A DNA stretch of 64,000 bases from IMGVR_UViG_3300020608_000013:124001-188000, one strand, 5' to 3'. Positions 5,402 through 64,000 are shown, counted from the stretch's first letter. Made by a program: numbers and translations. Notes: generated by a model from the sequence alone, not told the origin.

Positions 5402-6004
5402 TTAAAATTGACCTGGTGTTATCAGACCCACATCGCCCCTTTTTAAAAAAGAGCGGCTTCGGCTTGACGCTCTTATGTAGAGGTAGCACCTTTTATCCAG
5501 CGCAGGATGTTGTTTAATACTTTTTACCGTATAAACTGTTTTCTCACCTTTCTCAACAAAGACCTTTTCTTCATCAGTGGTTGTGATCTCACTACATAAA
5601 GTTGCTGTGTGGTAAATACACCATTTTGCCAATAAGGTGTGTTTTGTCGATAAGATGGTTTCTTCATGGTCTATGTGGTTTTCACCACGTTCCCTTACTA
5701 AGCCTCCGTCGACAAACCGTCTATAGTCACGAGCAAATAAGATTGGTCCATATTGTGCAATCTCTTTAAGATTTTTGTCAAAAAGGTAGATTGCTAGTTT
5801 ATTACCTAAATGGTGCGTCACCCCAAAGTAATCCTTGTTAAAGGTATGGACAATGACTTTCTCCCCCGTGTGTAGGTCCTTTGGCGGAGGTATGTCGTAA
5901 TAATGGTCGAGTAACCTTATGTTGTGCAAGGACCTAGCATCGTGTATTATTAATTCATCATAAGACCTGAATAATTTTTCAATCAAGATTTGGAAAATTG
6001 TCAT
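5402..6004 (-). CDS. Hypothetical protein
   Basis: 200-aa ORF with stop/start coupling to the upstream gene at 6004. Confidence 0.75.
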   Translation of the reverse strand: MTIFQILIEKLFRSYDELIIHDARSLHNIRLLDHYYDIPPPKDLHTGEKVIVHTFNKDYFGVTHHLGNKLAIYLFDKNLKEIAQYGPILFARDYRRFVDGGLVRERGENHIDHEETILSTKHTLLAKWCIYHTATLCSEITTTDEEKVFVEKGEKTVYTVKSIKQHPALDKRCYLYIRASSRSRSFLKRGDVGLITPGQF

Positions 6005-6615
6005 TATATCGTCGCATAGGTGAATTGCCCGTGCTTAATACGAGCAGGGACATTGTTTATGAACTCATTGACACTCGACCCAACAACCCGAGTGTCGTCG
6101 TTTAACTGTATAGTTAGTTTAGGACTAACATCATAAAGAGCCTCTATATTAACAAGCTCTCTACCACGTAGGTCTAGGAGTCTTAGGTTTTTGTAGGCGG
6201 TCAGTGTTCGACAGTCTATTTGCGCGTCAGGGTACGCGCTATTTAAGTAGAGCTGTTTTAGGCGGGGTGCGCCACCTATAATCGATAACCCTTGTACGTT
6301 AGAAGCATATAAAACCTCTAAATAAGGTAGTCTATATAAGACCACGACATCATCGTGGATGGGCCTTGAAATATCGAGTATGACTAGTTCTCTAAAGTCG
6401 CTTAAAAAGCTATAGTCTTTTATAAACGCACCTTCAAGGGTAATACCTTTAACGGTGTCATACCACTCTTGTGTTAGTTTATCGACGAAAACTTCTACAT
6501 TCACGGCATTTGTTAAATTGACAAATGGGGTTGGTTTTGGTAGGCGAGATTTTTGGTTTAAGGTCTGTACGTATGTTGTATTTCTATGTTTGAAAACATC
6601 GGGGGTGTTGAACAT
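6004..6615 (-). CDS. Leucine-rich-repeat protein
   Basis: Recurrent LxxLxL units: FRELVILDIS, LPYLEVLYASN, APRLKQLYLNS, YKNLRLLDLRGRELVNIEAL. Confidence 0.75.
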   Translation of the reverse strand: MFNTPDVFKHRNTTYVQTLNQKSRLPKPTPFVNLTNAVNVEVFVDKLTQEWYDTVKGITLEGAFIKDYSFLSDFRELVILDISRPIHDDVVVLYRLPYLEVLYASNVQGLSIIGGAPRLKQLYLNSAYPDAQIDCRTLTAYKNLRLLDLRGRELVNIEALYDVSPKLTIQLNDDTRVVGSSVNEFINNVPARIKHGQFTYATI

Positions 6616-6638
6616 TACATATCTCCGTTTTTGAGTTT

Positions 6639-7343
6639 TTAAAATTCATAATCTTCCACGTCAAGAGGTCTTCTAATAACCCCTAGCTCATCTTCGTCTA
6701 GATCGTCCTCGAACTCATCGTGGTCCTGTTCATCTGTATATACAGTTTTGATGGTCGTACTTTGTTGGAGGTACTGACTCAGTTCCTCCTTGTCGTAGTT
6801 ACTACCTAGTAGCGTTAGGCGTTCTATATCGGTATCGATTAAAGCGTCTAAATTCTCTAGGGTGAGACCTGATAGGTCTAGAGACGTTAACGACCTAAAT
6901 CCCGTTAAGAGGTTACAGTCTAGCACATCAGTGTCACACCATGTCGTCTCTGTTAAATCCAGGTGTACTAGAAGTGGTAACTTATGCAACCGCTCTAGCT
7001 CATGTGGGGGGAGGGTCGCTCCCTCCATTATTAGAACCTTGATGAACAGACCCTCAACGCCCTGAATCTGTTCTATATCATTATAGCTTATATCGCAATA
7101 ATGGATACTACGAAATAACGACATGCCGAAAAAATCCTCTAGAGCGTTTTCTCGACAGCGGATGGCGGTACAACCATTCATGAAAGATCGTGGTAATTCA
7201 AGGAGGACGGCGCTTTCTTCTAATACAACGTTATCTAGACTTAGGCTGAACCCTTCATCGTCCTTAAGTCGATCAGCTAGTTTAAACAACTCGATTAAGT
7301 CATTAGGTTCGTGCCATTGAACAGGCGTTTTAATCTCGGACAT
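6639..7343 (-). CDS. Leucine-rich-repeat protein with acidic C-terminal tail
   Basis: IHYCDISYNDIEQI, LPLLVHLDLTET, FRSLTSLDLSGLTLENLDAL, IERLTLLGSN; tail DEQDHDEFEDDLDEDE. Confidence 0.82.
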   Translation of the reverse strand: MSEIKTPVQWHEPNDLIELFKLADRLKDDEGFSLSLDNVVLEESAVLLELPRSFMNGCTAIRCRENALEDFFGMSLFRSIHYCDISYNDIEQIQGVEGLFIKVLIMEGATLPPHELERLHKLPLLVHLDLTETTWCDTDVLDCNLLTGFRSLTSLDLSGLTLENLDALIDTDIERLTLLGSNYDKEELSQYLQQSTTIKTVYTDEQDHDEFEDDLDEDELGVIRRPLDVEDYEF

Positions 7344-7378
7344 TTAAATTCCTCTTTCCATATTTTGATGCCAATATA

Positions 7379-7386
7379 ATAATATA
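7379..7386 (-). promoter_or_regulatory. Putative early (virion-RNAP) promoter core TATATTAT
   Basis: One of eight intergenic copies; one base from the phiKZ early promoter consensus TATATTAC; 36 nt upstream of the LRR gene start at 7343. Confidence 0.65.
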
Positions 7387-7414
7387 TGTTCGTAAATATT
7401 TACATTTAAAAGGA

Positions 7415-15115: not shown

Positions 15116-15127
15116 AGCTATAATACG

Positions 15128-15151: not shown

Positions 15152-15166
15152 TAAAAGGAGTAAAGT

Positions 15167-46619: not shown

Positions 46620-47573
46620 TTAAACATATCCACCTTGTTTAAAAACTTCGATTATTGATAACGTTTTTTGAGAGAGTTTAGTTTTTGTGTAGTTTAGATT
46701 CCGTTTCTGGTAAAGATTGATTGAATTAAATAAACGTTTTACAATTTCTTTTTCATGAGGTGTTGTACCCGACATTACTTTAGTAACGATATTGGTAGTT
46801 GGTTTATAAGGTACTGGTAGAGGTTTATCCATGTAAGGTTTAAAGACATCATTTTGTTTTAAATAGTCTTCAAAATATGTTTCTAAAATAGTCCTAATAA
46901 AATATCTGAACTTATAATGTTGGTCAACCACACTTTTCTCGTCATAAGGGTTGTCTTCACTTAAACCTTTGTCTAAGTATAATCCTAATGGTGTAATAAT
47001 ATTAAAAGACCCATTTTCATGAACCACCGCCCTTTTAAAATCACTATTACCATAAAGATTATAGAATTGCGTGAGCCTTAGTAACGCACATGGTGACAAA
47101 TGTCGTTCACAGACTTTTAAATGTTCTTGAAATGGCGTAGGGTTGCTTTTATAGTGGGTTAAGACAATAGATAGCTCTACAACACTTCGTCGCTCGAACA
47201 AATCGAACTGAGGTAACATATTTGCTATACTATCAACTACAATATTATCCTGTAAAATATATTCAGTTGTATAACTAGACCACCCTTGTCGGAGTATCGC
47301 ATGTGTTTGGAAAGCCAGTCCATCCTTAACAGGAGCTTTAAACAGTTCTTTAAAAAGTATTTCATCTAATTCGTCATAAAGGTTGTTATTGTTTTTACTA
47401 ATTAATTCTATTAATAAACGAAAAATATTAGGAGGTAGATAACTAAGCGGAGAATGTTTAATGTAGTTAATATCTTCACACTTCTTTAAATACGGTAATG
47501 CGATACATATATCCTCCACACAACCCTCTACCACCACTTTTTCGCAAAAATCTTTAATTAGTGCGTCGCTCAT
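46620..47573 (-). CDS. Hypothetical protein, paralog family C
   Basis: 317 aa; shared motifs as above. Confidence 0.8.
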   Translation of the reverse strand: MSDALIKDFCEKVVVEGCVEDICIALPYLKKCEDINYIKHSPLSYLPPNIFRLLIELISKNNNNLYDELDEILFKELFKAPVKDGLAFQTHAILRQGWSSYTTEYILQDNIVVDSIANMLPQFDLFERRSVVELSIVLTHYKSNPTPFQEHLKVCERHLSPCALLRLTQFYNLYGNSDFKRAVVHENGSFNIITPLGLYLDKGLSEDNPYDEKSVVDQHYKFRYFIRTILETYFEDYLKQNDVFKPYMDKPLPVPYKPTTNIVTKVMSGTTPHEKEIVKRLFNSINLYQKRNLNYTKTKLSQKTLSIIEVFKQGGYV

Positions 47574-47659: not shown

Positions 47660-48922
47660 TTATGTGTAAGGGTATTCTTTCACAAACCGCGAACCTTCCG
47701 TTTCAATATACTCAATTAGAAAGTCAAGTGTGACACCCTCTTCTTTAGTTGGGTCGACTAACTTTAAGGGGATATTAAACAAGGTCTTGTATCCGTGCTT
47801 CTCTACTAACCCTGCAAAGGTAGTGTAGTCGTCTTCAGATAGTGTAGTTTTAAGGTTGTCTAACACCCACGCCTCTTTTTGATCAATACCCTTACGGTTT
47901 TGACGATGAGTGTGTAATAACTGACCTACTACTGTTTTCAAGACCACATTATTTTCCAGATCATTAACCACTTGACTGATTTCTTCAGGTAAAGCGAGGT
48001 TTTCTGTCACGAACCCAGTATAATGGTCAACTAATTTAATTAAAAGCTTTTCTACGAAAGTTTGCTGACTAGGTGTAATATCCGCATAATCCACACCCTG
48101 TGTAGCCACACCATCTACAATACCTTTATCCACCGCCTCAATACAGCCTGGGGGTAGTTCATACCCCTTACAGAAGTCTGGGTAGTTTCTCGATAGTGCT
48201 GTACCGATACTCGCTAGTAAAGCAGTTTGTCTACTAACATAAACGTATTGAGGGAAAACTATTCCTTTATTAAAAAGTAGTTCATCTAGTTTATGGGCTA
48301 ACGTAGTCTCGATTTCCAATGGTGTGAGGTCTGTATCAAAAGTGTGTTGTATTGACTTCACACCACTAGTATTAAAACATGCGTTCATTGCGCGTGTCAG
48401 CTCATCCGACCCTTCCTCTTTAACAATCACCATGATCTCTTGCGCTGTAACCTCAACATCGCGGTAGATGTTAAGAATGTACATCAATTCAACAAAACGT
48501 TGCTGAACTCTTGGTTGTAGCTTACACAACAATGAAGCAGCTTGACCTCTACGTAAAGGCCGATCATAAACTTCTTCAGTCGATGGTAATGTGCCATATT
48601 CTTGACTATTTTTAATATATCTACCATCGATAATGATGTCCTTATGGAGGAAAGGTTTCCAGTGTGATGGTACATCTAACGGGGGGCGCGGGCAATGTTC
48701 TTTAACATAGTCTTCGTCAAGGGTGGGTAGTAATTCTACCATATAGTTTCGTAACGGAATGTCGTATGCGTTTAAAGGGTTGTTATATAGTACTAATGTA
48801 CTTAACAACGCTTCTTTATGTTTTAGCATGAGGGGTAGTACATCTTCAAGAGAGTGTTCACGAAATGTTCGTTCATCAGGATCAACATATGTCGTTTCCA
48901 TGAATTCTTTAATAGATAACAT
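47660..48922 (-). CDS. Hypothetical protein, paralog family C
   Basis: 420 aa; central region shares family-C motifs. Confidence 0.8.
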   Translation of the reverse strand: MLSIKEFMETTYVDPDERTFREHSLEDVLPLMLKHKEALLSTLVLYNNPLNAYDIPLRNYMVELLPTLDEDYVKEHCPRPPLDVPSHWKPFLHKDIIIDGRYIKNSQEYGTLPSTEEVYDRPLRRGQAASLLCKLQPRVQQRFVELMYILNIYRDVEVTAQEIMVIVKEEGSDELTRAMNACFNTSGVKSIQHTFDTDLTPLEIETTLAHKLDELLFNKGIVFPQYVYVSRQTALLASIGTALSRNYPDFCKGYELPPGCIEAVDKGIVDGVATQGVDYADITPSQQTFVEKLLIKLVDHYTGFVTENLALPEEISQVVNDLENNVVLKTVVGQLLHTHRQNRKGIDQKEAWVLDNLKTTLSEDDYTTFAGLVEKHGYKTLFNIPLKLVDPTKEEGVTLDFLIEYIETEGSRFVKEYPYT

Positions 48923-51478: not shown

Positions 51479-51481
51479 GAT

Positions 51482-52282
51482 TTAATTTCCTGTTTTTACG
51501 TAAATGTTATGGTTTTGTAAATATTCAACACTATCATAATCAAAATAGTATTGCTTTTCAGTGATTGTCACGACCTTTAAAGAAGGGCACGCGACTAGTT
51601 CTCGCAAGTTTTTAATAGTGGTGTTAACACATATCAAAGACGCTAAGTTACTAGGAAAGCTCCCATTGAAACAAAAATTACGGCAGTTAGAAAGTACTAA
51701 ACGTTCTAACCGTACTAATGGTTTAAAAACCATTTGATGTTCAGTAAGATCGCAATCGAGTATAAATAACGATGAACAGCTTCGCCACTCATAAACCACA
51801 TTGCGGAGTTCTTTCCTAACATCTAAGAATTTGTCTTTCGTCTTATCTTGTATGACGACCTCTTGCCTCAAATCACTATGTGTGATGACAAATTCGGTAA
51901 ATTTAGCAATGTGACCGTCAGCCCAATGTTTAAGGTTAGGGTGGCTAACAGCACACCCATAATCTTTTAATTCGCTAACGATGGCGCGAATAGCTTTCGT
52001 ATTTGGCATAGTAAGTTCACTGAGTAACGTGACGTTATCCAAATACATGCGTTTAGGCACAACATAGTTAGTAAGAACATTGAAGTCTCCTGACACTTCA
52101 CAGTTCTCAAGCACAATAACACTGGCATTGTGTTTCGCAACGTCTTCTACAGGGAGTCGCGAATCGTTCTTAACGGTTATTTGTTGCACACTTCCATGAC
52201 AAGTATCTCGTAAACCTTCTACTATATCCACATAGTTGTATAAAGCGCCCTGATCATCGAGCAATGGGTAGTTTTCACTCAT
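51482..52282 (-). CDS. LRR-like protein
   Basis: SVIVLENCEV, KRMYLDNVTL, SSLFILDCDL, VRLERLVLSNC, NLASLICVNTTIKNLRELVACPSLKVVTI. Confidence 0.65.
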   Translation of the reverse strand: MSENYPLLDDQGALYNYVDIVEGLRDTCHGSVQQITVKNDSRLPVEDVAKHNASVIVLENCEVSGDFNVLTNYVVPKRMYLDNVTLLSELTMPNTKAIRAIVSELKDYGCAVSHPNLKHWADGHIAKFTEFVITHSDLRQEVVIQDKTKDKFLDVRKELRNVVYEWRSCSSLFILDCDLTEHQMVFKPLVRLERLVLSNCRNFCFNGSFPSNLASLICVNTTIKNLRELVACPSLKVVTITEKQYYFDYDSVEYLQNHNIYVKTGN

Positions 52283-52371: not shown

Positions 52372-53130
52372 TTATACTAATTGTTTCTCCAGCGATTCTG
52401 TTTGACCGCTACATGCAAGGACTAGTAGTATAGTATTTAACTCGTTAAAGTTCCTATGGTTTAAGGACAGCATTTTACCCACAACATCATCTTTACCAGA
52501 TGAGTTCTGTTCGATACGTTTATAGGTATTCACCGCACGACTTAAAAGCTCTTCACTATGGCGAAAGAGTAATTTCTCGACAATCTTATCAGGTCGATCC
52601 CATGACCCTATAATAGTAGTAAGGTGTTGCGATAAGGCTTGCTCGACTTCCCAAGGTAGGTCTAACCATACGGGTGGTTTTTGCATATACTGGAGTAGTA
52701 ACCCTACATTAAGAATATCGCTATGAGCGCACCGAATACTCTTTAAGTATACTGCGGCGGCACTTAACGTCGCTAATGTCATATTATCGAGCGTTACACG
52801 GTTTTTAAAGTAATGTGGTATTATGTTACTAAACAGAAAGTGTAAGAACAGATCGTCGTCCAAAATAGAAACTTTACCATTAACATAAGCTGTACACATA
52901 TCGGTTAAAATACGCTGGAATTTCTTAATGACAAAACTATCTAGCCCACCCGACCGTTCGACAAGGGTGCGGGGTACGCTGATACGGTTACTATCAGCAC
53001 TATCAATAACCTCTTGACTGAAATATTGAAAAGGTGAGAATATATTATCTTCTACTGCACTACGGAAAACATTTTCAGCTCTTCTCAATACGAACACTTC
53101 TTGATATTGTACGCTTAATGTAGTTTTCAT
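52372..53130 (-). CDS. Hypothetical protein
   Basis: 252 aa, AGGAG SD. Confidence 0.8.
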   Translation of the reverse strand: MKTTLSVQYQEVFVLRRAENVFRSAVEDNIFSPFQYFSQEVIDSADSNRISVPRTLVERSGGLDSFVIKKFQRILTDMCTAYVNGKVSILDDDLFLHFLFSNIIPHYFKNRVTLDNMTLATLSAAAVYLKSIRCAHSDILNVGLLLQYMQKPPVWLDLPWEVEQALSQHLTTIIGSWDRPDKIVEKLLFRHSEELLSRAVNTYKRIEQNSSGKDDVVGKMLSLNHRNFNELNTILLVLACSGQTESLEKQLV

Positions 53131-53996
53131 TACTTTACTCCTAAAAAAGTTTTAGCTTGACTTACGAAACGTGGCATAACACTGTCTGTAGGGATCATTA
53201 CAGGCTTTTCATTTTCGTGTAAGGGTGTAAGTCTTAGTGTTGGTAAATTATCGAAAAAACGCTGTTTAAGCTCGGCTACGATTTTTGGGTGGCGTAACCA
53301 ACGGGCCAGCTCTTCGCCTTCATAGTTACCGAAACTTCCGCGTAATTTATCTAACTTGTTAGAGGTGAGGTGGAGATGTAATTGCTTAATTTGTCCCTCG
53401 CTCAACTTGTCAAATAAGTTATGGCTTAACCCTTTATATCGCACAGGATGACCAGCTAATAAAACATCTACAAATTCGTCGACGATGGGTGCAAAAGGCC
53501 GTTGTACCATGTTTTCTATATGCGATTCACAATGTGCGAGCACCTCATCAACATACCCTTGTAATTTCCAGCTATCTAAAGCGTGTATATCCATATACCG
53601 AATCATTTCTTCAATGATAGGTTGCTCTGGATCGTTGAAATCTAATTCATTTATCGGTGTTCGACTAACTTTCTCAATCGCACGTACAGTTAGGTAAAGG
53701 ATGAATGGGTCTTTATCAATCGAGAAATTAGAGCCAAAACTGTACAGTTGTAAAACATCTTTACAGAACGCATCGCGCTTTTCAACACTATCCTGCTCCC
53801 AGAAAATTGGTTCGTCGTTTACGTGAGTACAAGATGTATTTATTAACGTATTCCACTCTTCTTTGGTGAAATAATGATAGATTACGTTATTACATGCTAG
53901 ACTCTCCTTATTTAACTCATTAGTAATTGAACTAAAAAATGACACGACAGGTTTTAATAGGATCAGTTCTTTATTCACGGAGGTGTACATTAACAT
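53130..53996 (-). CDS. Hypothetical protein
   Basis: 288-aa ORF. Confidence 0.78.
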   Translation of the reverse strand: MLMYTSVNKELILLKPVVSFFSSITNELNKESLACNNVIYHYFTKEEWNTLINTSCTHVNDEPIFWEQDSVEKRDAFCKDVLQLYSFGSNFSIDKDPFILYLTVRAIEKVSRTPINELDFNDPEQPIIEEMIRYMDIHALDSWKLQGYVDEVLAHCESHIENMVQRPFAPIVDEFVDVLLAGHPVRYKGLSHNLFDKLSEGQIKQLHLHLTSNKLDKLRGSFGNYEGEELARWLRHPKIVAELKQRFFDNLPTLRLTPLHENEKPVMIPTDSVMPRFVSQAKTFLGVK

Positions 53997-54013
53997 AGTC
54001 TCTTATTTTATTT

Positions 54014-54047
54014 AAAAAAAAATAGGTGTTGGTCGCCAACCAACACC
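54014..54047 (-). terminator. Intrinsic terminator (near-canonical spacing), T9
   Basis: ggtgttggt-cgcca-accaacacc then TATTTTTTTTT on the minus strand. Confidence 0.8.
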
Positions 54048-54066
54048 CCACGGTTTACTACAACTT

Positions 54067-55122
54067 TCAACGTTCGTTCAATTCTGTGACGAACCTAACC
54101 AGTTGTTCTTTAAAAGCTTCGAGATCGGGTTCATGTAATTTACATGGGCCAAGTTCTTCGAGACCTTTCAAGGGTCGAATTTCTCCCGCAATGTAAGCTT
54201 TCAATAACACTTTTTCAAACCCTAATAGTTGATCACTAACTCTAGGTATGAATTGATTAAGCGGGAAGGGATTTTGACTATCGTTGAACTGATCACCCAC
54301 TACCTCTTTCCAGATAGTGTATTTAGCGTAGGCTAAATATGAATTAATACGAACCACTTTGTTATCTACGACTGAGGCTTTCGTGCAGATCAAATCCACT
54401 CTTTTAACGAGTAGGTCGACTAAATTATTCACTCTATCAGTGAGACAAATTGGTAATTGTGTCCCTGTTGAAGGAGTGGTTCGAGAAGGTGGTGTTGTTC
54501 TCGCGTACTCATTAACTTGTATATGGAAACCTTCGTAAGTGACAGTGACAGGACAATACCCGTGCTGCGTAACAATATCGCCTACATAAGCGCGTAAGTT
54601 ATCAAGAATTGTATTAGCGATAACATCGTAAGTTACAGTGGTCTGTGTAGAGCCGTTATAGCAGTCGATAATACCTGTAGCTAACGACTCCACCCATTTA
54701 TCAATACCTGTGTCATCACTAAAAGTGATATTATTTAAACGCGACTTACGGTAATCATCGTCGTTCAACATGGCTAAAAATAGCCGCGTATCGCCGTTCA
54801 AATAGTTACTTAGCAGTTTATTAAAGTTGTTGGAAGTCGCGCATTTAGGACATAGCTCGATAGCTCTAAACATTATAAAAGCTTTGAGCGTATTATATTT
54901 TTCTGGCACGTATGCAACGGCGAATGGTTTAAAATCGCGGTCTAGTCTAAACCCAGCATCTAGTATTTTAGTAAAGTCGTCTCTAGTGACGGCTCTTGTA
55001 CTCTTAGCAATCGCATCCAAGACACTTTCACTAATATCATATTCTTTACAAAGAGCTTCTAAACCCCCGTCATGCAGGTAGTGTAAGGGCTTTACACTTA
55101 ACTTGGTGGGTGCTAATTTCAT
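54067..55122 (-). CDS. Hypothetical protein
   Basis: 351 aa, AAGGAG SD. Confidence 0.8.
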   Translation of the reverse strand: MKLAPTKLSVKPLHYLHDGGLEALCKEYDISESVLDAIAKSTRAVTRDDFTKILDAGFRLDRDFKPFAVAYVPEKYNTLKAFIMFRAIELCPKCATSNNFNKLLSNYLNGDTRLFLAMLNDDDYRKSRLNNITFSDDTGIDKWVESLATGIIDCYNGSTQTTVTYDVIANTILDNLRAYVGDIVTQHGYCPVTVTYEGFHIQVNEYARTTPPSRTTPSTGTQLPICLTDRVNNLVDLLVKRVDLICTKASVVDNKVVRINSYLAYAKYTIWKEVVGDQFNDSQNPFPLNQFIPRVSDQLLGFEKVLLKAYIAGEIRPLKGLEELGPCKLHEPDLEAFKEQLVRFVTELNER

Positions 55123-55451: not shown

Positions 55452-55529
55452 TTGAGTTCTCCTTTATTTCTCACTATATTTACTTACACGGTATTTTATT
55501 ACCGTGTAAGCTGTTACAAAATATGTTGT

Positions 55530-56108
55530 TTATTTAAATAAGTTTTTCAATCGACTTACAACATATTTTAAAGACCCCATTAACTGTTTTGTAATTAAGG
55601 TAGCGGCTAACGTAAAATTAAAACTAGTTTTCTCCATATTAGAAACTTTATCAATAGTGTGTGGTACATACCCATTTAGAAAAAGAAAGTAATGGTTTGT
55701 ATCACCACCATCGTCGACCGCATGAATAATATTAACGCCCCCACTCAAAGGTTTTGTAACACGATGCTTTAACCACTTAATGTGATAGATAATACTATAA
55801 CGCTCCTTTCCCACCCTAGTATTGACCCATTTCACAATAGGGTGGTAATAAGAATAACCTTTATCAATTACCTCTACTTCATTTAATAGATTAACGTCAA
55901 TAGATTCTAAAAACCGTTTATTGTTTAAGCAAATTAAATTAATTATAAATAACGGTTTATCAACGCGGACATAACTTACCACAGGGATAATTAATTTACT
56001 ATTTTTAAAGAACGTATATAGTGTATCATAGTTTATCCTACATTCGTAATAATCTACTACATAAGTCCAATTTTTAGCAAACATTTCTTCTTTACTAAAT
56101 ACATGCAT
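55530..56108 (-). CDS. Hypothetical protein, paralog family D
   Basis: FIINLICLNNKRFLESIDVN...KWVN matches 56131 YVIDLVCINDDYLLDNIDLN...KWVN. Confidence 0.75.
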   Translation of the reverse strand: MHVFSKEEMFAKNWTYVVDYYECRINYDTLYTFFKNSKLIIPVVSYVRVDKPLFIINLICLNNKRFLESIDVNLLNEVEVIDKGYSYYHPIVKWVNTRVGKERYSIIYHIKWLKHRVTKPLSGGVNIIHAVDDGGDTNHYFLFLNGYVPHTIDKVSNMEKTSFNFTLAATLITKQLMGSLKYVVSRLKNLFK

Positions 56109-56130
56109 AATAGCTTCCCCTACATTTTAC

Positions 56131-56643
56131 TTAAAAGTGGCGTTTAAACCAATTTAAACACTTTCTAAAAAACGACTCTACCTCTTCAAATGGCAGAGGG
56201 TTTACAGAAAGGTTATAATTTTCATTTAACCCGTAGCGGTGGTTTAACCATATAATCATACCAACATCGTCTTTTAGAACACTCATCTTTTCAAGTATGT
56301 TATCGGGGCAATCGGGTAGATTATGGTCTAGGAGTCGTTCTATGTGACCAACTGCTAGTTTACGATCGTTTTGGGGTAAACCATTTACCCATTTTGAAAA
56401 GTAAACATGGTCTTTAAAAAGCGCTGTGCTCGTAAGTACCCCACCATTTAAATCGATATTATCCAGTAAGTAGTCGTCATTTATACACACTAAGTCGATT
56501 ACATACCTAACATCTAAAGGGACAATGAGTTGCCTAGGCATAACCAACATTAAACCCATTGCTTTTTCGACATACGCTTCATACCTGTGGGGGTGCTCGT
56601 ATAGTTCAACAAAAAACAAGGGTACGTTTATACCTGATTCCAT
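56131..56643 (-). CDS. Hypothetical protein, paralog family D
   Basis: 170 aa; shared motifs as above. Confidence 0.75.
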   Translation of the reverse strand: MESGINVPLFFVELYEHPHRYEAYVEKAMGLMLVMPRQLIVPLDVRYVIDLVCINDDYLLDNIDLNGGVLTSTALFKDHVYFSKWVNGLPQNDRKLAVGHIERLLDHNLPDCPDNILEKMSVLKDDVGMIIWLNHRYGLNENYNLSVNPLPFEEVESFFRKCLNWFKRHF

Positions 56644-58325
56644 TTACGACCCCCATTGTGAGGTTGCGTAATAACGTTTACGCTTTTACCCATCTTCGTC
56701 AGTCGTTTAAAATTTTCCATACTACCAACTGACTTCCCATCCCATATTACAATACCTCTCGTACAATCCGTACTCATGTGAAAGTCTTTAGCCATGTGTA
56801 AGATACGTCCGTTACTACTCTTCGCTTCGATGTAGCGTAAATGGAATAGACCGCTTGCTAAATTACGCGGTTGTTTACCTGAGTAGTAGACCATCACATT
56901 CTTTTCATAGTGGTGCTTCTTCAAGTATTCTTGTACAAGCGTGTCTACACCGCTACAATCCCCCACAAACACGATTTCGTTATTAGTCATTAAAACATCA
57001 AGTCCTTTAATCACTTTAGGAGGTAATTCTCGTACAATAGACCGAGACCCACTTATGAAGACACTATCTCGACCACTAAATAAGTCAGCAAGAGGTTCTT
57101 TCAATAGCTGCTTAATAATGTTGTCAAACTCAACCACTAAAACGGAATCTACATTAGTGACATCTACACTATGCTCAAACACCTTGAGAATAATAGAAAA
57201 ATATTCATTATTATTCATTTTATTTTGAGCCACTTGTTCTTTAACACAAGCGATTATTTCATCACTATCTCTAAAGATAGTGTATTCTTGACATATTTTT
57301 TCCAGTATAGCGATCCCTGTCGCAACGCTAGTATTTAATATAGCATCAATATTACCTTCAATAGCTTGCTTAAAACTAGCTATTGTCTTTACAGGTGTTA
57401 TTGTAATACCCCCTGTTATTAACGTTTCAAAGAGTTTTTCAAAACTCTTCTCAGCTTCTAAAGTACTCCCAAGATTATCGAAATAATCACCCATGTCATC
57501 AATAGTCAACCCGTTAATAACCTCTACAGACTTGTTAAATAAGGTATTAAGTTCGTTCAATACGCGTTGATATTGCTCAGTGATATTATAAGACGCGATC
57601 TCTCCTTCAGATAGTGCGTAGGGTTCGAGAACCTTTCGTAAAAAGTAAATAAGCGTATTAGTGTCACCATTACCCAATACACCCGTTAACGCTACATCGC
57701 CCATAGCTTCTAAATCACGGGTCACACCATATGCACGCTCCACCTCTACTAGGAAGTTTAATATGGTGTAATTAGCTCGCTCTACTTTACTATTAATTAT
57801 GTTCAGTATATCGTATAGTGCGGTAACTACCACGACATCATTCACATAAAACAAGGTTTCTTCGCTACTTTCCCTAGCCTCTTCCAGTATTTCACCGACC
57901 AATCCGTCGTTTACTCTACCAGTTTCTTCAAGTTTAAAAGTTGCGTATTCTAATATCTCCTTTTTAAATTCTATTAATACTGAATTTATCATTTTAATAT
58001 CAATAGACATTAAGCATAGGTCGAGGTCATGAGTGGTCAACCCAGATTTAAACACTTTTAGTACATCAGGTTTTGACCGCCCGTCATTAATAATCTTTAC
58101 TATTTTATCATTGTCAAAGCCAAACTTTAGTCTATTATTTAACCATAATAACGTTTGCGTGAACCCTTTTGTATTGAGGGCACGTAGATCACTTTCGCTT
58201 AATTCAATAAGTATGAAGCCGTTAATATGCTTTTTACAAGCTTCTTTATCCTTTTCAGAGTACTCTGTGTTAGGTAGTGTTAGCGAATCTGCTATATCGT
58301 TTAATAATGTATTTTTTACTTTCAT
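56628..58325 (-). CDS. Helical N-terminal region fused to a C-terminal SLOG-superfamily domain
   Basis: C-terminal ~135 aa (~56660-57065): VFISGSRS, FVGDCSGVDTLVQEYL, PRN, KDFHM, GIVIWDGKSVGSMENFKRL...GKSV, which is the SLOG (YspA/YAcAr-like) Rossmannoid pattern. Confidence 0.8.
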   Translation of the reverse strand: MKVKNTLLNDIADSLTLPNTEYSEKDKEACKKHINGFILIELSESDLRALNTKGFTQTLLWLNNRLKFGFDNDKIVKIINDGRSKPDVLKVFKSGLTTHDLDLCLMSIDIKMINSVLIEFKKEILEYATFKLEETGRVNDGLVGEILEEARESSEETLFYVNDVVVVTALYDILNIINSKVERANYTILNFLVEVERAYGVTRDLEAMGDVALTGVLGNGDTNTLIYFLRKVLEPYALSEGEIASYNITEQYQRVLNELNTLFNKSVEVINGLTIDDMGDYFDNLGSTLEAEKSFEKLFETLITGGITITPVKTIASFKQAIEGNIDAILNTSVATGIAILEKICQEYTIFRDSDEIIACVKEQVAQNKMNNNEYFSIILKVFEHSVDVTNVDSVLVVEFDNIIKQLLKEPLADLFSGRDSVFISGSRSIVRELPPKVIKGLDVLMTNNEIVFVGDCSGVDTLVQEYLKKHHYEKNVMVYYSGKQPRNLASGLFHLRYIEAKSSNGRILHMAKDFHMSTDCTRGIVIWDGKSVGSMENFKRLTKMGKSVNVITQPHNGGRKWNQV

Positions 58326-58425
58326 GTTGATTTCCTAATTGTTGAAAAAATTTACCAATAACCCATTTCTTAATTTTACATTAGAACCTCCTTCATTTCT
58401 ACACAAACTATTTTTTTAAAGTGGT

Positions 58426-58481
58426 AAAAAAATATTAAAACAGATTATGTATAGGAGGTAGTCTAACTACCTCCCATACAT
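58426..58481 (-). terminator. Hairpin (58447-58481, one mismatch), 14-nt gap, then T7
   Basis: atgtat-a-ggaggtag-tctaa-ctacctcc-c-atacat. Confidence 0.65.
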
Positions 58482-58486
58482 CCACG

Positions 58487-58639
58487 CTACTCTTCTAAAT
58501 CACGGTGCAGGTGTTCGCCTACATCGATTGGCTCACTATCATCGTCGTCATCATCAATGGAGTCTACCACGGCATCAAACGTCAGTGACTCATCTTCTGG
58601 CAAACATTTTACCAAAAGGTTTATTAATTGTTCGATCAT
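58487..58639 (-). CDS. Hyperacidic micro-protein (50 aa), not in ORF track
   Basis: MIEQLINLLVKCLPEDESLTFDAVVDSIDDDDDDSEPIDVGEHLHRDLEE; 18 D/E; ATGA coupling to the upstream stop, GAGG SD. Confidence 0.65.
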   Translation of the reverse strand: MIEQLINLLVKCLPEDESLTFDAVVDSIDDDDDDSEPIDVGEHLHRDLEE

Positions 58640-58902
58640 GAATCGCCCTCCGTCTCAATACTACACTCTCTCAAATAGAGTTGTGTCACAGAACGATCTA
58701 ACAAAATACCAGCTTTGTTAGTTTTAGGGTAACTATACACTCTGTCTAGAAGCCTCCTCCGCACCTCTGCTAAAGTCGCGTTTGGTGTGAAAACCAGCCC
58801 ACAATCCCTCTCTAATAATTGACGGACTTTCACTACATCAAGTTGTCTTGAATGTCGCTCGATGACAACAGACACTGTGAAAAAATATGATACGTCGTTC
58901 AT
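58636..58902 (-). CDS. Hypothetical protein
   Basis: 88 aa, GAGG SD. Confidence 0.7.
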   Translation of the reverse strand: MNDVSYFFTVSVVIERHSRQLDVVKVRQLLERDCGLVFTPNATLAEVRRRLLDRVYSYPKTNKAGILLDRSVTQLYLRECSIETEGDS

Positions 58903-58918
58903 AATAACCTCTTATTAC

Positions 58919-59353
58919 TTAAGTTAAATTGTATCCACTACCGCAAATTACGGCAATGTAAGCTTTTGTACACTCTCTTATCAATTCTTTCTTTATACGA
59001 GGGTTCTTAATCGTGTTAATTTTCGCTAATGATGATTTAATAACCATAAGTCTAACCTCCATATAATCGTCTTTTAACTCCCCCTCAGTGAGAGGGTTTT
59101 CTAATTTACTATAAAACGAACAATCCTCCATTAAACGATTGTAGATGTTTTGGTATAGGAGACCCCTCATTTGCCCCTCTAGTACCTCTTTTTCTTTACG
59201 TAATGTTGTTCTTAAAAGAGCATCGTCGACGCTATCCTCATCTACCACATTCCATCGTTTTTTCAACTTAGACAAGTTTACATCACTCAGCTCTAGCTCG
59301 CGCTCTAGAAGCAATTGGGTAGGCATATCACCTAAGAATTTTAAGTGGTTCAT
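58919..59353 (-). CDS. Hypothetical helical protein
   Basis: 144-aa ORF. Confidence 0.75.
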   Translation of the reverse strand: MNHLKFLGDMPTQLLLERELELSDVNLSKLKKRWNVVDEDSVDDALLRTTLRKEKEVLEGQMRGLLYQNIYNRLMEDCSFYSKLENPLTEGELKDDYMEVRLMVIKSSLAKINTIKNPRIKKELIRECTKAYIAVICGSGYNLT

Positions 59354-59358
59354 ATTAT

Positions 59359-59808
59359 CTATCCTATATCATATATTACGAAATGGGTGTCTGTCCCCAT
59401 GTATTTTTCAATCATCGACGGGTATACGTCAGACCTTTCCAGTTTACCTAAACCACAACCTAATGGTGGTAACGCGACTGAATGTAGATTCATGTCTACA
59501 CTACATTGATATATTACATCTATCGCGGCTTTCACATACTCTTTCGTAGACTCATCTTTCCAATGTTTTTTAGTCGGTACGTTTAGTATGTAGTATGGCG
59601 CATAAGCGCCGTTAATTGAGTGGATCAACGCGCTCCCTATACGAAGACGACCTTCGCTACAAGCCTCTTTATAAAGAGTGTAGTTTTCAGGGTAATGGTT
59701 CTTAAACGCCAGTGCGAGACCTGCGCCTGAAACACCGACAGTGTTAACAGGGTTGATAATCGCCATCTCTGTGGCGTTAAAGATATTCCCACGCTTAAAG
59801 GTTATCAT
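59359..59808 (-). CDS. Macrodomain ADP-ribosylglycohydrolase, DarG-like
   Basis: ITFKRGNIF, IINPVNTVGVSGAGLALAFK..YPENY..YKEAC, NVPTKKHW (DarG-type catalytic Lys context), SVALPPLGCGLG. Confidence 0.92.
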   Translation of the reverse strand: MITFKRGNIFNATEMAIINPVNTVGVSGAGLALAFKNHYPENYTLYKEACSEGRLRIGSALIHSINGAYAPYYILNVPTKKHWKDESTKEYVKAAIDVIYQCSVDMNLHSVALPPLGCGLGKLERSDVYPSMIEKYMGTDTHFVIYDIG

Positions 59809-60611
59809 ACACTCCCCAGACCCTTTAACTTTTTACGTAAGATGCGCTCTCTTACAAAACTATATGGTGCTGTATAGAAAAATTTAAGTTTAGGCACTAG
59901 TCTTTCCTCTTTTAAATGAGCAACTAGGCTCTCTACAAGCACTTTTAAAAGTTTAGGGTTCGTTGTTTGGTACATAATAAGAGACATTTGTACACTCCCT
60001 TTATCAAGTGTACTTATTACGTCTTTTATTTCGGTATAAAAATGTAAAGACCCCCACGTAATATTTTTCTCCTTACACACCATGTAAAGTCTCAATGCGA
60101 ACAGAACGTAAGTAGTACGTGACTTAACCCCAAACTTACCATCAATGACTAACCTTGCTAGACTAACCGTATTCTCTTCCGTCATTGAGTTATCATGGCT
60201 CAATTCTGGTAAAGGGTGTGCGGCGGTAACTATTCGCCATTTTAGTAGCCCGTCTAACCATAACTCTCTCACAAGCGTTAATGGGTGTGTATAAGGTAGA
60301 TATGTAAACCCTAACAATTCTCTTGCTGTAAAAAAAACATGTGCGCCTGCAATGATGTACTTGTGGTCCATTTCAACATAACGCTGTAACCGCTCTTTAA
60401 CAACCTTATCTTTAACGTGATCAATCTCTCGCACTATTATATCTCTTATACGGTCCTCATTTACAGGGACAGTCTCCTTCTCTGTCATATTACTTAACTT
60501 TAAGTAAAATATTGTTAATTCATTACGGGCGCTCGTCCCATGCTGGTAGAATAATGTAGTGGACACCCAGTCCACTAAGTCTACTAATATTTTCTTATCT
60601 AGCTTACTCAT
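59805..60611 (-). CDS. Hypothetical protein
   Basis: 268 aa, coupled to the macrodomain gene (GTATGA overlap). Confidence 0.8.
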   Translation of the reverse strand: MSKLDKKILVDLVDWVSTTLFYQHGTSARNELTIFYLKLSNMTEKETVPVNEDRIRDIIVREIDHVKDKVVKERLQRYVEMDHKYIIAGAHVFFTARELLGFTYLPYTHPLTLVRELWLDGLLKWRIVTAAHPLPELSHDNSMTEENTVSLARLVIDGKFGVKSRTTYVLFALRLYMVCKEKNITWGSLHFYTEIKDVISTLDKGSVQMSLIMYQTTNPKLLKVLVESLVAHLKEERLVPKLKFFYTAPYSFVRERILRKKLKGLGSV

Positions 60612-60676
60612 TTTAAAATACCTTTTAGTATGAGACCATGTTCATATATGAACATGGTCGTGATTAAGCGCTTGTT

Positions 60677-61084
60677 TTAGAATTTAACCCCGTTAAATTC
60701 TCCATATAAAGCGAAGAAAGTAATATGTACTAGCATCTCTTTGATGCGAGATTTATACGCCTTTAGGAAATAGCGAATATCACTTCTTCTATTACGGACT
60801 GCATAGGCCTGCATATAAATACGACCCAATTCAACCATCGTGATCTGATCTTTCTTACACAAGATCAAAATCCTCGTGCGCTCGCAAGGGAGCGAGTTTA
60901 ACTTCTCTAATAGTTCGACGGCATCGTACGCCTCCCCCGTCACACTACATTCGTAATCTAGTACGAAAGCATGATTAAAAAAACCTGACAGGGTTTTCCG
61001 CGCTTCCACTCCTTTATTCCCATTTAGGATGTTTTTGAATTGAAGGAAGGTGTCATATTTTAATTGTTCACGACGTGTTGTCAT
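60677..61084 (-). CDS. Hypothetical protein
   Basis: 135 aa, GAGG SD, first gene after promoter 61139. Confidence 0.75.
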   Translation of the reverse strand: MTTRREQLKYDTFLQFKNILNGNKGVEARKTLSGFFNHAFVLDYECSVTGEAYDAVELLEKLNSLPCERTRILILCKKDQITMVELGRIYMQAYAVRNRRSDIRYFLKAYKSRIKEMLVHITFFALYGEFNGVKF

Positions 61085-61138
61085 CTTAATAACCTCTTAT
61101 AAATTTAAAGTATGGTATTATCCCTTAATACCATACTT

Positions 61139-61146
61139 ATAATATA
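61139..61146 (-). promoter_or_regulatory. Putative early promoter core TATATTAT
   Basis: Immediately followed by the hairpin aagtatggtatta-aggga-taataccatactt. Confidence 0.7.
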
Positions 61147-61175
61147 TGTTTATAATTAGCTATATTAACCCTTTT

Positions 61176-61231
61176 AAAAAAAAATATGATGCATTAGTTA
61201 GTATAAAGGTGGAAAACCACCTTTATACTAA
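61176..61231 (-). terminator. Hairpin (15-bp stem 61198-61231), 13-nt gap, then T9
   Basis: ttagtataaaggtgg-aaaa-ccacctttatactaa. Confidence 0.75.
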
Positions 61232-61239
61232 TAGATATT

Positions 61240-61926
61240 TTACATAATATCTAGAACAGAGCCTTTAAAGAGTTCGGTGTTTAACACCTCACCTCCACTA
61301 ACGTGGAGGTAGCCCAACTTGTCTAACGGTAGGTCTTTTAAATCGACTTTAAACCCCATTCCTGTAACAGAAAGAAAGTCTAAATGTTTATACCCTTTCA
61401 ATAAACTGAAGTCTGGTTGACTATCGACAGTCAGCATTATATTCAGCGCATCGTCTCTTAACCTGAAGATATTGTTGACAACATTACTACTAACGACCTC
61501 GATAGGCGCAATAAGTCCACATGACACCCCTCTAAAAGCTTCATCTGGGATGATAGTAGAGCCTTTTATAATCTCTCCAATTTCACGACGCACACGTACC
61601 TCAATACCAGCATCAATGCAAGCTAGTAAAGGTGCTACGTGTTTCTTGGCAGTACTACCTTCATAGTACACCGTCTTTAAGCCTTTAATGGCTGACAAGT
61701 CTTGCGTCTTAATACTACAATTCTCAATAACAATACAATTTACGCTACCTGTGATTAGTACATCGTACACGAACCCGTCACCTGTGAATACAAGTGTATC
61801 AAGGTCTTGTTTAATAGCAATTGGGTTTCTAATGGTGGCATTATTAAAAAATAATACATTTACTTTTACAGAAGAAACCATATTCTGACCAACGACTATT
61901 TCTTCAAAATATTTCACATTTTCCAT
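61240..61926 (-). CDS. Degenerate LRR-like protein (two-module family)
   Basis: DLDTLVFTG, VNCIVIENCSIKTQDLSAIKGLKTVYY, CIDAGIEVRV, YKHLDFLSVTG, DLPLDKLGYLHVSG. Confidence 0.55.
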   Translation of the reverse strand: MENVKYFEEIVVGQNMVSSVKVNVLFFNNATIRNPIAIKQDLDTLVFTGDGFVYDVLITGSVNCIVIENCSIKTQDLSAIKGLKTVYYEGSTAKKHVAPLLACIDAGIEVRVRREIGEIIKGSTIIPDEAFRGVSCGLIAPIEVVSSNVVNNIFRLRDDALNIMLTVDSQPDFSLLKGYKHLDFLSVTGMGFKVDLKDLPLDKLGYLHVSGGEVLNTELFKGSVLDIM

Positions 61927-61951
61927 TTCTATTACCTTATATTAAAATTAA

Positions 61952-61981
61952 TAGAAAGGTGGATAACTGACCACCTTTCTA
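61952..61981 (-). terminator. 11-bp hairpin sharing the aaaggtgg/ccaccttt core with the 61198 hairpin
   Basis: tagaaaggtgg-ataactga-ccacctttcta. Confidence 0.45.
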
Positions 61982-62004
61982 TACTAAACAATTAGACTAT
62001 ACCA

Positions 62005-62529
62005 CTACTTACCTTTTTTAGCCTTGGTCTTTTTACCCACCGATTGTTTGTGCAATCGTGTTGGAATAAAAGCACCCACTGACTTAAAAGTGTACGTCAC
62101 TTTATTATGTGTTCTAGGGAGGTCGAGGTTTGACATAAGGCAATGTTGTATTACTGCTTTTCTAGCTTTAACTAACAATGGCTTCTTCGCTATTGAATGC
62201 ATGGCGGCTATGTTATCAACCTTGATCTCTCTATTAAAGACACCATAGTGTTTCAACTGGTAGTGTCTCCCCTCTACAAACTCCCACCCGAAAAAGGACG
62301 TAGTCTTGATATACTCGAAGAGTTGCTTACTCGTGGCGAATACGGGGACTGAACTCACTGATTTTGCACGTTTGTTCAATTTTTTCACAGACCCTTTCGA
62401 GGTCAAGTCTGTCAGTGGTGATGGTACATACGTGTCCGCTGGCTTCCATTCAAGCCCTACATCTGCCGAGGTATTTAAAGCAGTTACGATAGTTGCAGTG
62501 GCTAAGGTATATAGTATTACGTTTTTCAT
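62005..62529 (-). CDS. Putative exported protein (signal peptide), basic
   Basis: MKNVILYTLATATIVTALNTSA|DV: basic N-terminus, hydrophobic core, T-S-A cleavage site; Lys-rich C-terminus. Confidence 0.65.
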   Translation of the reverse strand: MKNVILYTLATATIVTALNTSADVGLEWKPADTYVPSPLTDLTSKGSVKKLNKRAKSVSSVPVFATSKQLFEYIKTTSFFGWEFVEGRHYQLKHYGVFNREIKVDNIAAMHSIAKKPLLVKARKAVIQHCLMSNLDLPRTHNKVTYTFKSVGAFIPTRLHKQSVGKKTKAKKGK

Positions 62530-62626
62530 AAAGTTCCCTTTTAAAAGTTTAGTTTAGTGTAATGGGTGTGTATTTCACCCATTACAAATAGACTCATCTT
62601 GCAGTAGATGGTCGTCATGATACGCA

Positions 62627-63343
62627 CTATCTTGATCGCATAGTACGCACTTTCGTCATCCCAATATGGTTGATGGCGTTTTCAATACCCGTGGGTAGGT
62701 TGACAAGAATAATCTCGTCGATTTCTAACGGCTCAATTACATCTAGGAGCGTGGTATGTGAGCCACGCCAATCCTTTATGATTAGACGTTTAAGGGTGGG
62801 GAAGTCTTCTAGGTTTAATTCTAATGAACTTCTTCGGCGTAGTTCTAGTGATAATATACATGCGCGGTCGTCACCTAAATTGTCTAATGGTGCGTTACCA
62901 CTCATGCGCTCGAAAAAACAACAGGGTTCTTCTTCATAAACAACCACACCTTTCACCTTTAGTCTTTTCAGTACTTCCTTATCGTTACATGATAAGGGTT
63001 CTTCAAGCCTGTAGTAAGAGACTGTCTTCAACGGCAATTCTTCTAGGGAATCGAAATTGTATAGAATACAACCTTCAAAATGGAGGTGTTGTACCTTAGT
63101 ACCCCATAACCGTCTCAACTCGACTTCCACGCCTTTAAACTCAAGGTGTGTTACACCTCTCAAATCTACGCCATTCAAGTCGTGGGGTAGGTCTAGAATA
63201 CGATGGGCAGGATGCGTACCCATGTCAACCGTAGTCCCATAATATGTATATCCTTCACCATAAGATGTTATTTGAGTCACGCTATCGCCTGTTGCGATAG
63301 GTGAGTTTTTTAAATTGCCGTTTATGTTAATCACATTTGCCAT
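62627..63343 (-). CDS. LRR-like protein (two-module family)
   Basis: LRGVTHLEFKG, TKVQHLHFEGCILYNFDSLEELPLKTVSY, LKVKGVVVY, FPTLKRLIIKD, LEIDEIILVN. Confidence 0.65.
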   Translation of the reverse strand: MANVININGNLKNSPIATGDSVTQITSYGEGYTYYGTTVDMGTHPAHRILDLPHDLNGVDLRGVTHLEFKGVEVELRRLWGTKVQHLHFEGCILYNFDSLEELPLKTVSYYRLEEPLSCNDKEVLKRLKVKGVVVYEEEPCCFFERMSGNAPLDNLGDDRACILSLELRRRSSLELNLEDFPTLKRLIIKDWRGSHTTLLDVIEPLEIDEIILVNLPTGIENAINHIGMTKVRTMRSR

Positions 63344-63346
63344 TTT

Positions 63347-64000
63347 TTAGTCCTCAATCACTTCTAAGACCACACCTTTACTAGCAAGACGTTTAATCTC
63401 TGTTGGTAATGGTACACTTTGACCTTTAAGTGTAAGATGTCTCAACGTTGTTAGGTTATGTAATAATTCAGGGTGTGGTATATTCCCTTGAATTGTTAAG
63501 TGAAATACCTTTGTCTTGGCGATTTCGTTAATCAAGAAAGGCCAGCCTCCTTCGTAATCGTTGATTACGACCTCTTCCAGGTTTTTATGACGTAGTAAAA
63601 TCGACCGAACGCCAATGCCAGGACCTTTCTTTATAATAAACTTCGTTACAAAGCGATCCTCATCATCGCCTAAACCTGTCTTGGGTGAGAAGAACTCTAC
63701 CCACACACCTCTCTCACGTAACGTTGGGATTACGTCATCAATGCGACCGTCAAAGACGACCGAATTAGAGACAATGCCAACAAACCCTAATTTCTTTAGA
63801 TCGCAAAGTTTGTCAATACTACGGATCGTTGCGTTCTCTAGCAGTAATTCAGCTACACTACTATCGTTACATAAGTGACGTAAGTCAAAAGTGTCGTTTC
63901 GCAAATGTAATGATCGTACATATCGGTCATTTACTTTTTTGAGCACGCTATCATTACCGATAGTGGTTGCTTTACTCAGTAGCTCAACTCTGTCAAGCTT
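63347..64000 (-). CDS. LRR-like protein (two-module family); 5' end lies beyond the right window edge
   Basis: The frame stays open upstream of the track's GTG 63946 to 64000 (KLDRVELLSKATTIGNDS). YVRSLHLRN, VAELLLENATIRSIDKLCDLKKL, LRERGVWVEF, NLEEVVIND, NLTTLRHLTLKG, LASKGVVLEV. Confidence 0.7.
   Translation of the reverse strand, partial: KLDRVELLSKATTIGNDSVLKKVNDRYVRSLHLRNDTFDLRHLCNDSSVAELLLENATIRSIDKLCDLKKLGFVGIVSNSVVFDGRIDDVIPTLRERGVWVEFFSPKTGLGDDEDRFVTKFIIKKGPGIGVRSILLRHKNLEEVVINDYEGGWPFLINEIAKTKVFHLTIQGNIPHPELLHNLTTLRHLTLKGQSVPLPTEIKRLASKGVVLEVIED

Follow-up and report, generated by a model that had tools for sequence, protein, structure and literature searches.

The 64,000-nucleotide (nt) stretch of DNA analysed here (hereafter the window) corresponds to positions 124001-188000, on the same strand, of the 212,020-bp contig IMGVR_UViG_3300020608_000013. 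An initial annotation had proposed that it encodes an expanded family of at least six leucine-rich-repeat (LRR) proteins, spread over three loci of a jumbo phage. All six open reading frames (ORFs) are present, on the minus strand (Table 1), and the window takes in the border of a gene family that has been amplified in tandem and is specific to this lineage; it encodes small LRR-only proteins of ~230-325 amino acids (aa), and most of the array was concealed by the window boundary. Positions past base 64000 are given in an "ext" numbering that extends that of the window (contig = ext + 124000; L002 = 74001 - ext; L004 = 88021 - ext).

The 24 kb following the window contain an unbroken same-strand run of genes encoding proteins of 230-325 aa each. 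BLAST clusters 11 of these genes (ext 64181-74087 and ext 80479-81303) at pairwise identities of 20-38%, and adjacent genes are mutual best matches at 30-38% identity; closest relatives are thus neighbours, indicating local tandem duplication. A hidden Markov model (HMM) built from the 11 genes recruited 61243-61926 and 51485-52282 in the window and the genes at ext 76030, 79378, 81395 and 83187, each scoring above the best decoy, while 63350-64081, 62630-63343 and the genes at ext 74176, 75035 and 78196 scored above the 99th decoy percentile. The 5,049 decoys were composition-matched, shuffled or reversed sequences, the best of which reached 12.6 bits against the core HMM, and were used to calibrate within-genome E-values computed with Z = 100. 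Weaker members are also tied to others by BLAST, 62630 to the gene at ext 74176-74952 (E 4.5e-5) and ext 75035 to ext 76030 (E 2.5e-13).

HMM recruitment enlarged the BLAST cluster from 11 to 18 genes, and the count stands at 17 robust and ~4-8 probable family members, with paralogue identities of 12-38% overall. The array comprises ~20 genes on the same strand, arranged head-to-tail, and takes up 22.8 kb (ext 61243-84068), or 10.8% of the genome, within a 64-gene unidirectional block of ORFans that extends from window position 35124 to ext 87477. The expansion is therefore larger than the initial annotation, with its six genes or more, had indicated, the genome total being ~23 LRR genes with ~20 in tandem. 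A walk of the whole genome with the family HMMs, in line with its suggestion to look for further members elsewhere, placed ~17 array members beyond base 64000 and none in the remaining 124 kb. The family became visible only after DNA past the window was added; BLAST within the window alone showed none.

The array proteins have a two-module layout in the family alignment. The N-module contains approximately three LRR units and ends in "...LK.(I/V)(Y/F)V ... L..(R/K)GV.V"; a stretch peculiar to the family, characterised by "G..L.L.G" and "C.N.GYE..A", connects it to the C-module, which follows the pattern "F.NL..L.L ... DC..LP.SL..L.V..T.L.NI..L ... L..V" and again closes in a "GV.V"-type strand, so that both modules finish in a cap strand. 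Some members have a C-module that is also matched by an HMM of the N-module (E 5.5e-7 and 1.6e-5), pointing to internal duplication. When compared with the PDB, the 11-member profile matched essentially only LRR proteins, including 7yjw (1.7e-8), LIC10831 (4e-8), LIC11098 (6e-8) and YopM (3e-5), and did so over both modules, while a 21-member profile that included the window members reached 9.6e-12 with 4r5c. Pfam LRR_4 was detected at E <= 0.01 in 4 of the 21 members (best 7e-9); the LRR clan is characterised by tandem units of 20-30 residues that share a segment of the LxxLxLxx(N/C)xL type.

No non-LRR Pfam, PHROG, enzymatic or anchoring domains were detected in these proteins (Pfam for the six ORFs and 21 members; PHROGs for the six ORFs and four neighbours). 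Hydrophobic segments are absent from every member (maximum KD19 <= 1.68). PADLOC returned a single match over the 21 members, TIR-like and marginal (E 0.0049), beyond which no curated anti-defence or defence family was matched in these members, PHROGs also giving none. The family proteins are, as judged from their sequences, soluble and domain-poor. A secreted or surface location was rejected on the absence of signal peptides from the members.

AlphaFold2 (AF2) modelling of a core member (L002:5067-5885) gave a predicted local distance difference test score (pLDDT) of 84 and a predicted template-modelling score (pTM) of 0.82, with short, regularly spaced strands. Foldseek comparison of this model with the PDB returned nearly all LRR proteins (InlB, LRRC8, LIC10831, SDS22) with probability up to 0.99, non-LRR matches being few and low-ranked. 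The same was seen for the array member that crosses the window end (63347-64081), in which residues 50-130 (pLDDT 80-95) and 170-230 (pLDDT ~77) form two confident modules separated by a disordered linker; the top 50 of 50 PDB matches were LRR proteins, mostly internalins, with probability up to 1.00 and template-modelling (TM) scores of only 0.19-0.42. The array proteins are, in these predicted models, locally LRR with an overall shape unlike known solenoids.

Support for the individual window members is graded. The dispersed member at 51482-52282 scores 18.7 bits with the core HMM and 21.4 bits with the C-module HMM, compared with best decoys of 12.6 and 17.1, and is also matched by hhalign (E 5.6e-5) and Pfam LRR_4 (E 0.0018). 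The member at 61240-61926 scores above all 5,049 decoys with both the core (20.1 bits) and N-module (17.4 bits) HMMs, and its hhalign alignment covers both modules. The ORFs at 62627-63343 and 63347-64081 exceed the 99th decoy percentile only; the Atlas model of the former (pTM 0.41) has mostly LRR structural neighbours (TM 0.44-0.57). Pfam LRR models are individually sub-threshold for 61240-61926, 62627-63343 and 63347-64081, and hhalign of the family profile against single sequences gives low probabilities (3-66%), the aligned parts being sensible LRR segments. No LRR signal was found in the neighbouring ORFs at 4311-6004, 52372-55122 and 59805-62529.

The two ORFs at 6004-7343 are, with confidence in the prediction, canonical small LRR solenoids. 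The ESM Atlas model of 6004-6615 (pTM 0.83) has LRR proteins as 10 of 10 structural neighbours (TM 0.68-0.75), and this ORF alone among the six passes a Pfam LRR gathering score (LRR_4, 28.1 bits compared with 27). Every listed neighbour of the 6639-7343 model (pTM 0.79) is likewise an LRR protein (TM 0.64-0.71), and both models align with their LRR neighbours over ~170-205 residues. Each of the two proteins retrieved only itself from a collection of 5.8e9 proteins, and with the 11-paralogue HMM they score only above the 99th decoy percentile.

The low-complexity acidic tail of 6639-7343 comprises ~35 residues. Its layout resembles that of ANP32, a eukaryotic nuclear chaperone with an LRR cap plus acidic tail, in placing an LRR domain before a long acidic low-complexity tail, but there is no significant sequence similarity between the two, and ANP32 chains appear among the weak matches of the array-family profiles, not of 6639-7343 itself. 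The tail is also reminiscent of acidic DNA-mimic tails, in layout only.

The six LRR ORFs proposed in the window thus consist of two confident solenoids and four family members with graded support. The evidence on which they were proposed, LxxLxL strings seen by eye, fared less well than the conclusion. A plain regular-expression count of LxxLxL-type motifs was not above shuffled expectation and failed to set the six ORFs apart from the others, and all-versus-all BLAST within the window produced a sole link, over 30 aa between 6007-6615 and 6642-7343; profile and structure methods were needed to recover the signal. The LRR fold is a right-handed alpha/beta solenoid whose one face is a parallel beta-sheet. 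The solenoids expected of structural models were obtained for the pair at 6004-7343 (TM 0.64-0.75), while the array models are LRR-like locally, with global TM of 0.2-0.4.

An AT-rich motif with a consensus of about AAAC(A/G)TATATTATAA recurs upstream of genes in this genome. Two thirds of the exact TATATTAT cores genome-wide (26 of 39) lie in the 5.8% of DNA that is non-coding (binomial P 2e-23), and 22 of these 26 intergenic sites precede a minus-strand gene by 5-170 nt in the same orientation, often or usually with a hairpin ~5-40 nt after the motif. The 64-gene block contains 11 motif sites, and sequences resembling ribosome-binding sites (RBS) are conserved as well. Jumbo phages that encode RNA polymerase (RNAP) each have a ~10-nt AT-rich motif upstream of presumed early operons, which is a virion-RNAP early promoter wherever tested (PMC7598289). 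By analogy, TATATTATAA is probably the early virion-RNAP promoter of this phage, and the LRR genes would be transcribed early, as had been suggested; the motif upstream of LRR operons fits the virion-RNAP early-promoter class.

Variation between natural strains was also found within the array. A strain contig from run ERR15087779 (L006) is 96.4% identical over ext 62707-66606, and per-gene ratios of non-synonymous to synonymous substitution (dN/dS) against it are 0.20-0.68 (0.21 for 62627-63343), indicating coding, constrained genes. Nucleotide identity falls to 89% in 63350-64081, compared with 97-99% in the adjacent genes, and reaches 100% between genes. This gene has 19 aa changes within residues 61-105, in the N-module LRRs, where substitutions at exposed x-positions are radical and those in the Leu/Ile skeleton conservative, while residues 181-244 show no difference at all, silent sites included. 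This mosaic pattern suggests recombination. The strain from SRR11747015 (L005), 99.98% identical, was of no use for selection analysis.

Contigs of four other metagenomes, compared over 58001-64000, show gene loss. Two of them (X2 and X3) skip 61439-62361 (923 bp), a deletion that truncates 61240-61926 and its neighbour and fuses what is left of ORF 62005-62529, in a different frame, with the end of 61240-61926, and a third (X5) lacks 59596-60561 (966 bp), comprising most of ORF 59805-60611. This variation is consistent with rapid turnover. The proposal of a diversifying set is upheld in part, by paralogue divergence (12-38% identity), a strain-variable LRR patch and the loss of a member from some strains, but not by the selection ratios, which are below 1.

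These data also bear on whether there is a functional system at all, or only Leu-rich patterns that arose by chance in ORFs of separate origin, or duplicates that are decaying and have no function. The motif count at the level of shuffled sequence, the lack of a BLAST link for most window members and the deletion of one member would each agree with such an absence of function, which is nevertheless largely refuted and highly improbable: profile and structure evidence supports LRR modules, HMM scores exceed those of 5,049 decoys, the ORFs are intact with dN/dS of 0.2-0.7, and promoters and RBS-like sequences are conserved.

We consider the chances about even that the family is a set of intracellular protein binders that is expressed early and evolves like an accordion. 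The virion RNAP would transcribe the LRR genes early from TATATTATAA promoters, and the proteins would remain inside the infected cell, where they would serve as scaffolds for protein binding. Each paralogue could recognise a different host (or competitor) protein, blocking defence or redirecting host machinery, and the array would grow, diverge and shrink in accordion fashion under host-phage conflict.

Several points weigh against this proposal. Early timing is assigned by analogy, none of the sequencing runs containing the phage being an RNA run. There is also no motif near 51482-52282, making early expression less secure for that gene. On the structural side, AF2 alignments were shallow (11-21 sequences), and the best Foldseek TM for L002:5067-5885 is 0.27-0.33 (E >= 8e-3), no solved LRR fitting its global geometry well. 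Individual support is moderate only for four of the six window ORFs, single-sequence phmmer searches of the PDB with 51485-52282, 61243-61926 and 62630-63343 found no LRR match, and the pair at 6004-7343 may have no more in common with the array than the LRR fold. Finally, dN/dS comes from two alleles only and is below 1, and this strain comparison does not prove positive selection.

A more specific version, which we regard as rather less likely than not, is that the array is a counter-immunity repertoire built on the scaffold of cellular immune receptors, in which ~20 early paralogues each bind and inactivate, or serve as decoy for, a different host defence sensor or effector and the set is retuned by duplication, module recombination and loss. 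If true, it would correspond, in a phage, to the terminal multigene families involved in host range in poxviruses, African swine fever virus and giant viruses. An early promoter, rapid turnover and lineage specificity would fit equally with a role in conflict between mobile elements, such as superinfection exclusion or inhibition of co-infecting phages or satellites. Nothing specific favours such a role, however, and known exclusion domains were not found with Pfam, PHROG or PADLOC; it is accordingly considered quite unlikely.

Full-length relatives of the family were confined to the phage itself and its strain variants. A HMMER search of 1.84 billion representative proteins with the core profile gave 10 full-length matches (E <= 1.6e-63), all of which are the phage's own genes or strain variants 94-100% identical to them, the remainder being generic multi-stretch LRR similarity. 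A tblastn search of 50,697 GenBank phage records with one core member and both proteins of the 6-7.3 kb region found nothing at E 0.1, and an 861-aa ORF had no match among GenBank phages by megablast or tblastn. A word-indexed protein search recovered nothing except the cluster to which the query belongs and a single strain variant, and is uninformative on paralogues. The nearest viral models in BFVD come from entomopoxviruses and giant viruses, in which they belong to LRR, FNIP and F-box families, and none of the top 50 is a named phage protein. No LRR multigene family in any jumbo phage, or in tailed phages more generally, was found in the literature searched.

The stated rarity of LRR proteins in phages is in agreement with these searches (no match to three proteins in the phage records and no full-length relative among the representatives), and neither the phage records nor the literature revealed LRR sets common in phiKZ-like genomes, which would have counted against the initial annotation. 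This distribution also argues against the family serving the phage's own cell biology, for instance as adaptors or chaperones that assemble proteins into, or sort them to, the nucleus-like shell or early vesicle, each paralogue being suited to its own phage cargo. The phage is phiKZ-like, LRR scaffolds are generic protein binders and the genes are under purifying selection, all compatible with such a function, but core cell-biology factors of chimalliviruses are family-wide, whereas this LRR family is absent from the other phages searched and some natural strains do without one of its members. Such a role therefore has a low probability, similar to that of mobile-element conflict.

The only use of LRRs by a chimallivirus found in the literature searched is in Goslar, of the same virus family type, where gp86, gp92 and gp161 function in host recognition and have, besides DUF7941, carbohydrate-binding, hydrolase or LRR domains (10.64898/2026.04.21.720040). 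By this precedent the LRR proteins could be virion-associated modules for host recognition or adhesion, acting as alternative receptor binders. The phage does encode a DUF7941 protein, the pair at 6004-7343 adjoins, divergently, a 2566-aa tail-fibre/lysin gene, and strain variability is typical of receptor binders too.

However, the Goslar proteins are large components of the virion that begin with DUF7941, a module for oligomerisation, and have a C-terminal LRR or beta-helix, while the proteins here are small, LRR-only and encoded behind early-type promoters, with no DUF7941 hit in the six ORFs or 21 family members and no other anchoring domain. The array also lies in an ORFan block with the early-type motif, away from tail and head genes, and even 6639-7343 has the motif 36 nt upstream. 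A virion role is thus considered improbable, and intracellular binding remains the preferred reading.

The closest known proteins include bacterial LRR proteins with short repeats of ~20-25 residues, namely the Listeria internalins InlA and InlB, Leptospira LIC10831, LIC11098 and LIC12759, and Yersinia YopM, which gave the best profile and fold matches and are protein-binding scaffolds. The "L..(R/K)GV.V" end of the family module aligns close to the C-terminus of LIC11098, at residues 318-378 of its 398. In contrast to internalins, the phage proteins have no signal peptide, LRR_adjacent or Ig-like inter-repeat domain or cell-wall anchor, and they differ from bacterial LRR proteins in having 3-4 repeats per module and two modules per protein, in occurring as ~20 tandem phage-encoded copies, and in the global TM of the array models to any solved LRR, which is <= 0.42. 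Effectors of the LRR-NEL/YopM type belong to type III secretion, and IpaH, SspH and SlrP among them carry a NEL ligase domain at the C-terminus. Similarity to these effectors is at the LRR level only (YopM, E 3e-5), no NEL or other catalytic domain being found here.

In genomic form, the array resembles the families of large eukaryotic DNA viruses, such as the entomopoxvirus "leucine rich repeat gene family" and those of Klosneuvirinae and CroV, which also comprise many divergent, accessory paralogues; accordion-type evolution has been reviewed for the multigene families of large viruses (PMC13359090). Many of these have an F-box or another adaptor domain, of which the phage proteins have none, and no sequence homology was detected beyond the LRR fold (E ~1e-3, TM 0.2-0.35). 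Families of LRR binders are themselves known, and what is new here is the compact two-module LRR layout, the genomic form and the viral host class. Large DNA viruses of eukaryotes are typified by multigene families of repeat proteins that grow and contract under pressure from the host, and the phage case, if confirmed, would be one of testable accordion evolution, providing natural small binders whose targets could expose new nodes of host defence or takeover.

Table 1. Coordinates of the LRR genes, promoter-like motifs and other features of the phage genome (window numbering unless marked ext, L002 or L019)
Feature	Position	Strand	Basis or remark
Stand-alone LRR solenoid protein, 203 aa, ~5-6 repeats of 20-25 aa	6004-6615	-	Pfam LRR_4 and ESM Atlas model
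LRR solenoid with strongly acidic C-terminal tail, 234 aa, isoelectric point 4.15	6639-7343	-	First operon gene behind promoter-like motif
Dispersed two-module family member, 266 aa	51482-52282	-	C-module at residues ~170-250 matches family C-module
Promoter-distal array member, 228 aa, last gene along transcription	61240-61926	-	HMM and hhalign
Array member, weakest of the six, 238 aa	62627-63343	-	Atlas model and BLAST
Array member, 244 aa complete (217 C-terminal codons in window)	63347-64000, ending at window-equivalent 64081 (L002:9920-10654)	-	AF2 and Foldseek
Interspersed non-members of the array	62005-62529; ext 70791-71321; ext 81826-82461		
Non-LRR protein, 177 aa, signal-peptide-like hydrophobic N-terminus	L002:2680-3213 (ext 70791-71321)		Mid-array
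TATATTAT motif core	7379-7386	-	36 nt upstream of 6639-7343 start
Motif sites in window	7379, 19668, 28941, 39292, 41998, 46599, 47610, 61139	-	More in L002/L004 and genome-wide
Motif sites before array operons	ext 64145, 66993, 74140, 80332		
Split RNAP beta-type subunit genes	2611-4218 and 1-2605	-	PHROG 2986; 868-aa ORF leaves window at start
Giant virion-associated cell-wall-degrading protein, 2566 aa	7415-15115	+	PHROG tail-fibre region, SLT transglycosylase and VanY-type peptidase
DUF7941 protein, 547 aa	L019:11350-12993 (contig ~35 kb)		Chimallivirus-specific fibre module described for Goslar

The source genome was analysed as a composite of exactly 212,020 bp, for which the sister assemblies of samples 3300020607 and 3300020608 were combined. 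The first 141 bp of the contig are identical to the last 141 bp (L009:1-141 and the L008/L004 end), and the assembly is therefore complete and circularly closed at ~211.9 kb. Wrapping of the array across the contig junction was considered and rejected after the contig ends were checked. PHROG matches include an RNAP beta subunit (E 7.5e-136), virion structural proteins and a UvsX-like recombinase, and precomputed Pfam families elsewhere in the genome include phiKZ_gp29PR, PhiKZ_VTX, PhiKZ_MCP, phiKZ_IP, DUF7941 and divDNApol. By these matches the genome is that of a phiKZ-like (Chimalliviridae-type) jumbo phage, in keeping with the initial annotation, whose jumbo-phage assignment is further borne out by the tail and virion PHROGs and the 212-kb contig.

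In tblastn the RNAP subunit reaches no more than 34% identity (to jumbo phages of Ralstonia, Erwinia and Vibrio), making the phage distant from every isolate, and with RNAP beta-type subunits <=34% identical to those of isolates it represents a deep, unsampled branch of phiKZ-like phages. The metagenome runs that contain it derive from biofilm, marine, hydrothermal-vent and hot-spring environments. No tRNAs were found in the window.

The 2566-aa tail-fibre/lysin gene and the LRR pair at 6004-7343 are adjoining genes in divergent orientation, while the 547-aa DUF7941 protein is encoded far away from them and from the other LRR genes, and no LRR match is recorded for it. Other small paralogue groups were also observed in the ORFan block: 38429-39229 with 39785-40924; 40906-41919 with 42967-45552; 45639-46544 with 46620-47573 and 47660-48922; and 55530-56108 with 56131-56643. 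These groups are linked by BLAST at E 1.6e-37 to 4e-3, and duplication is thus general to this region and not confined to the LRR genes.

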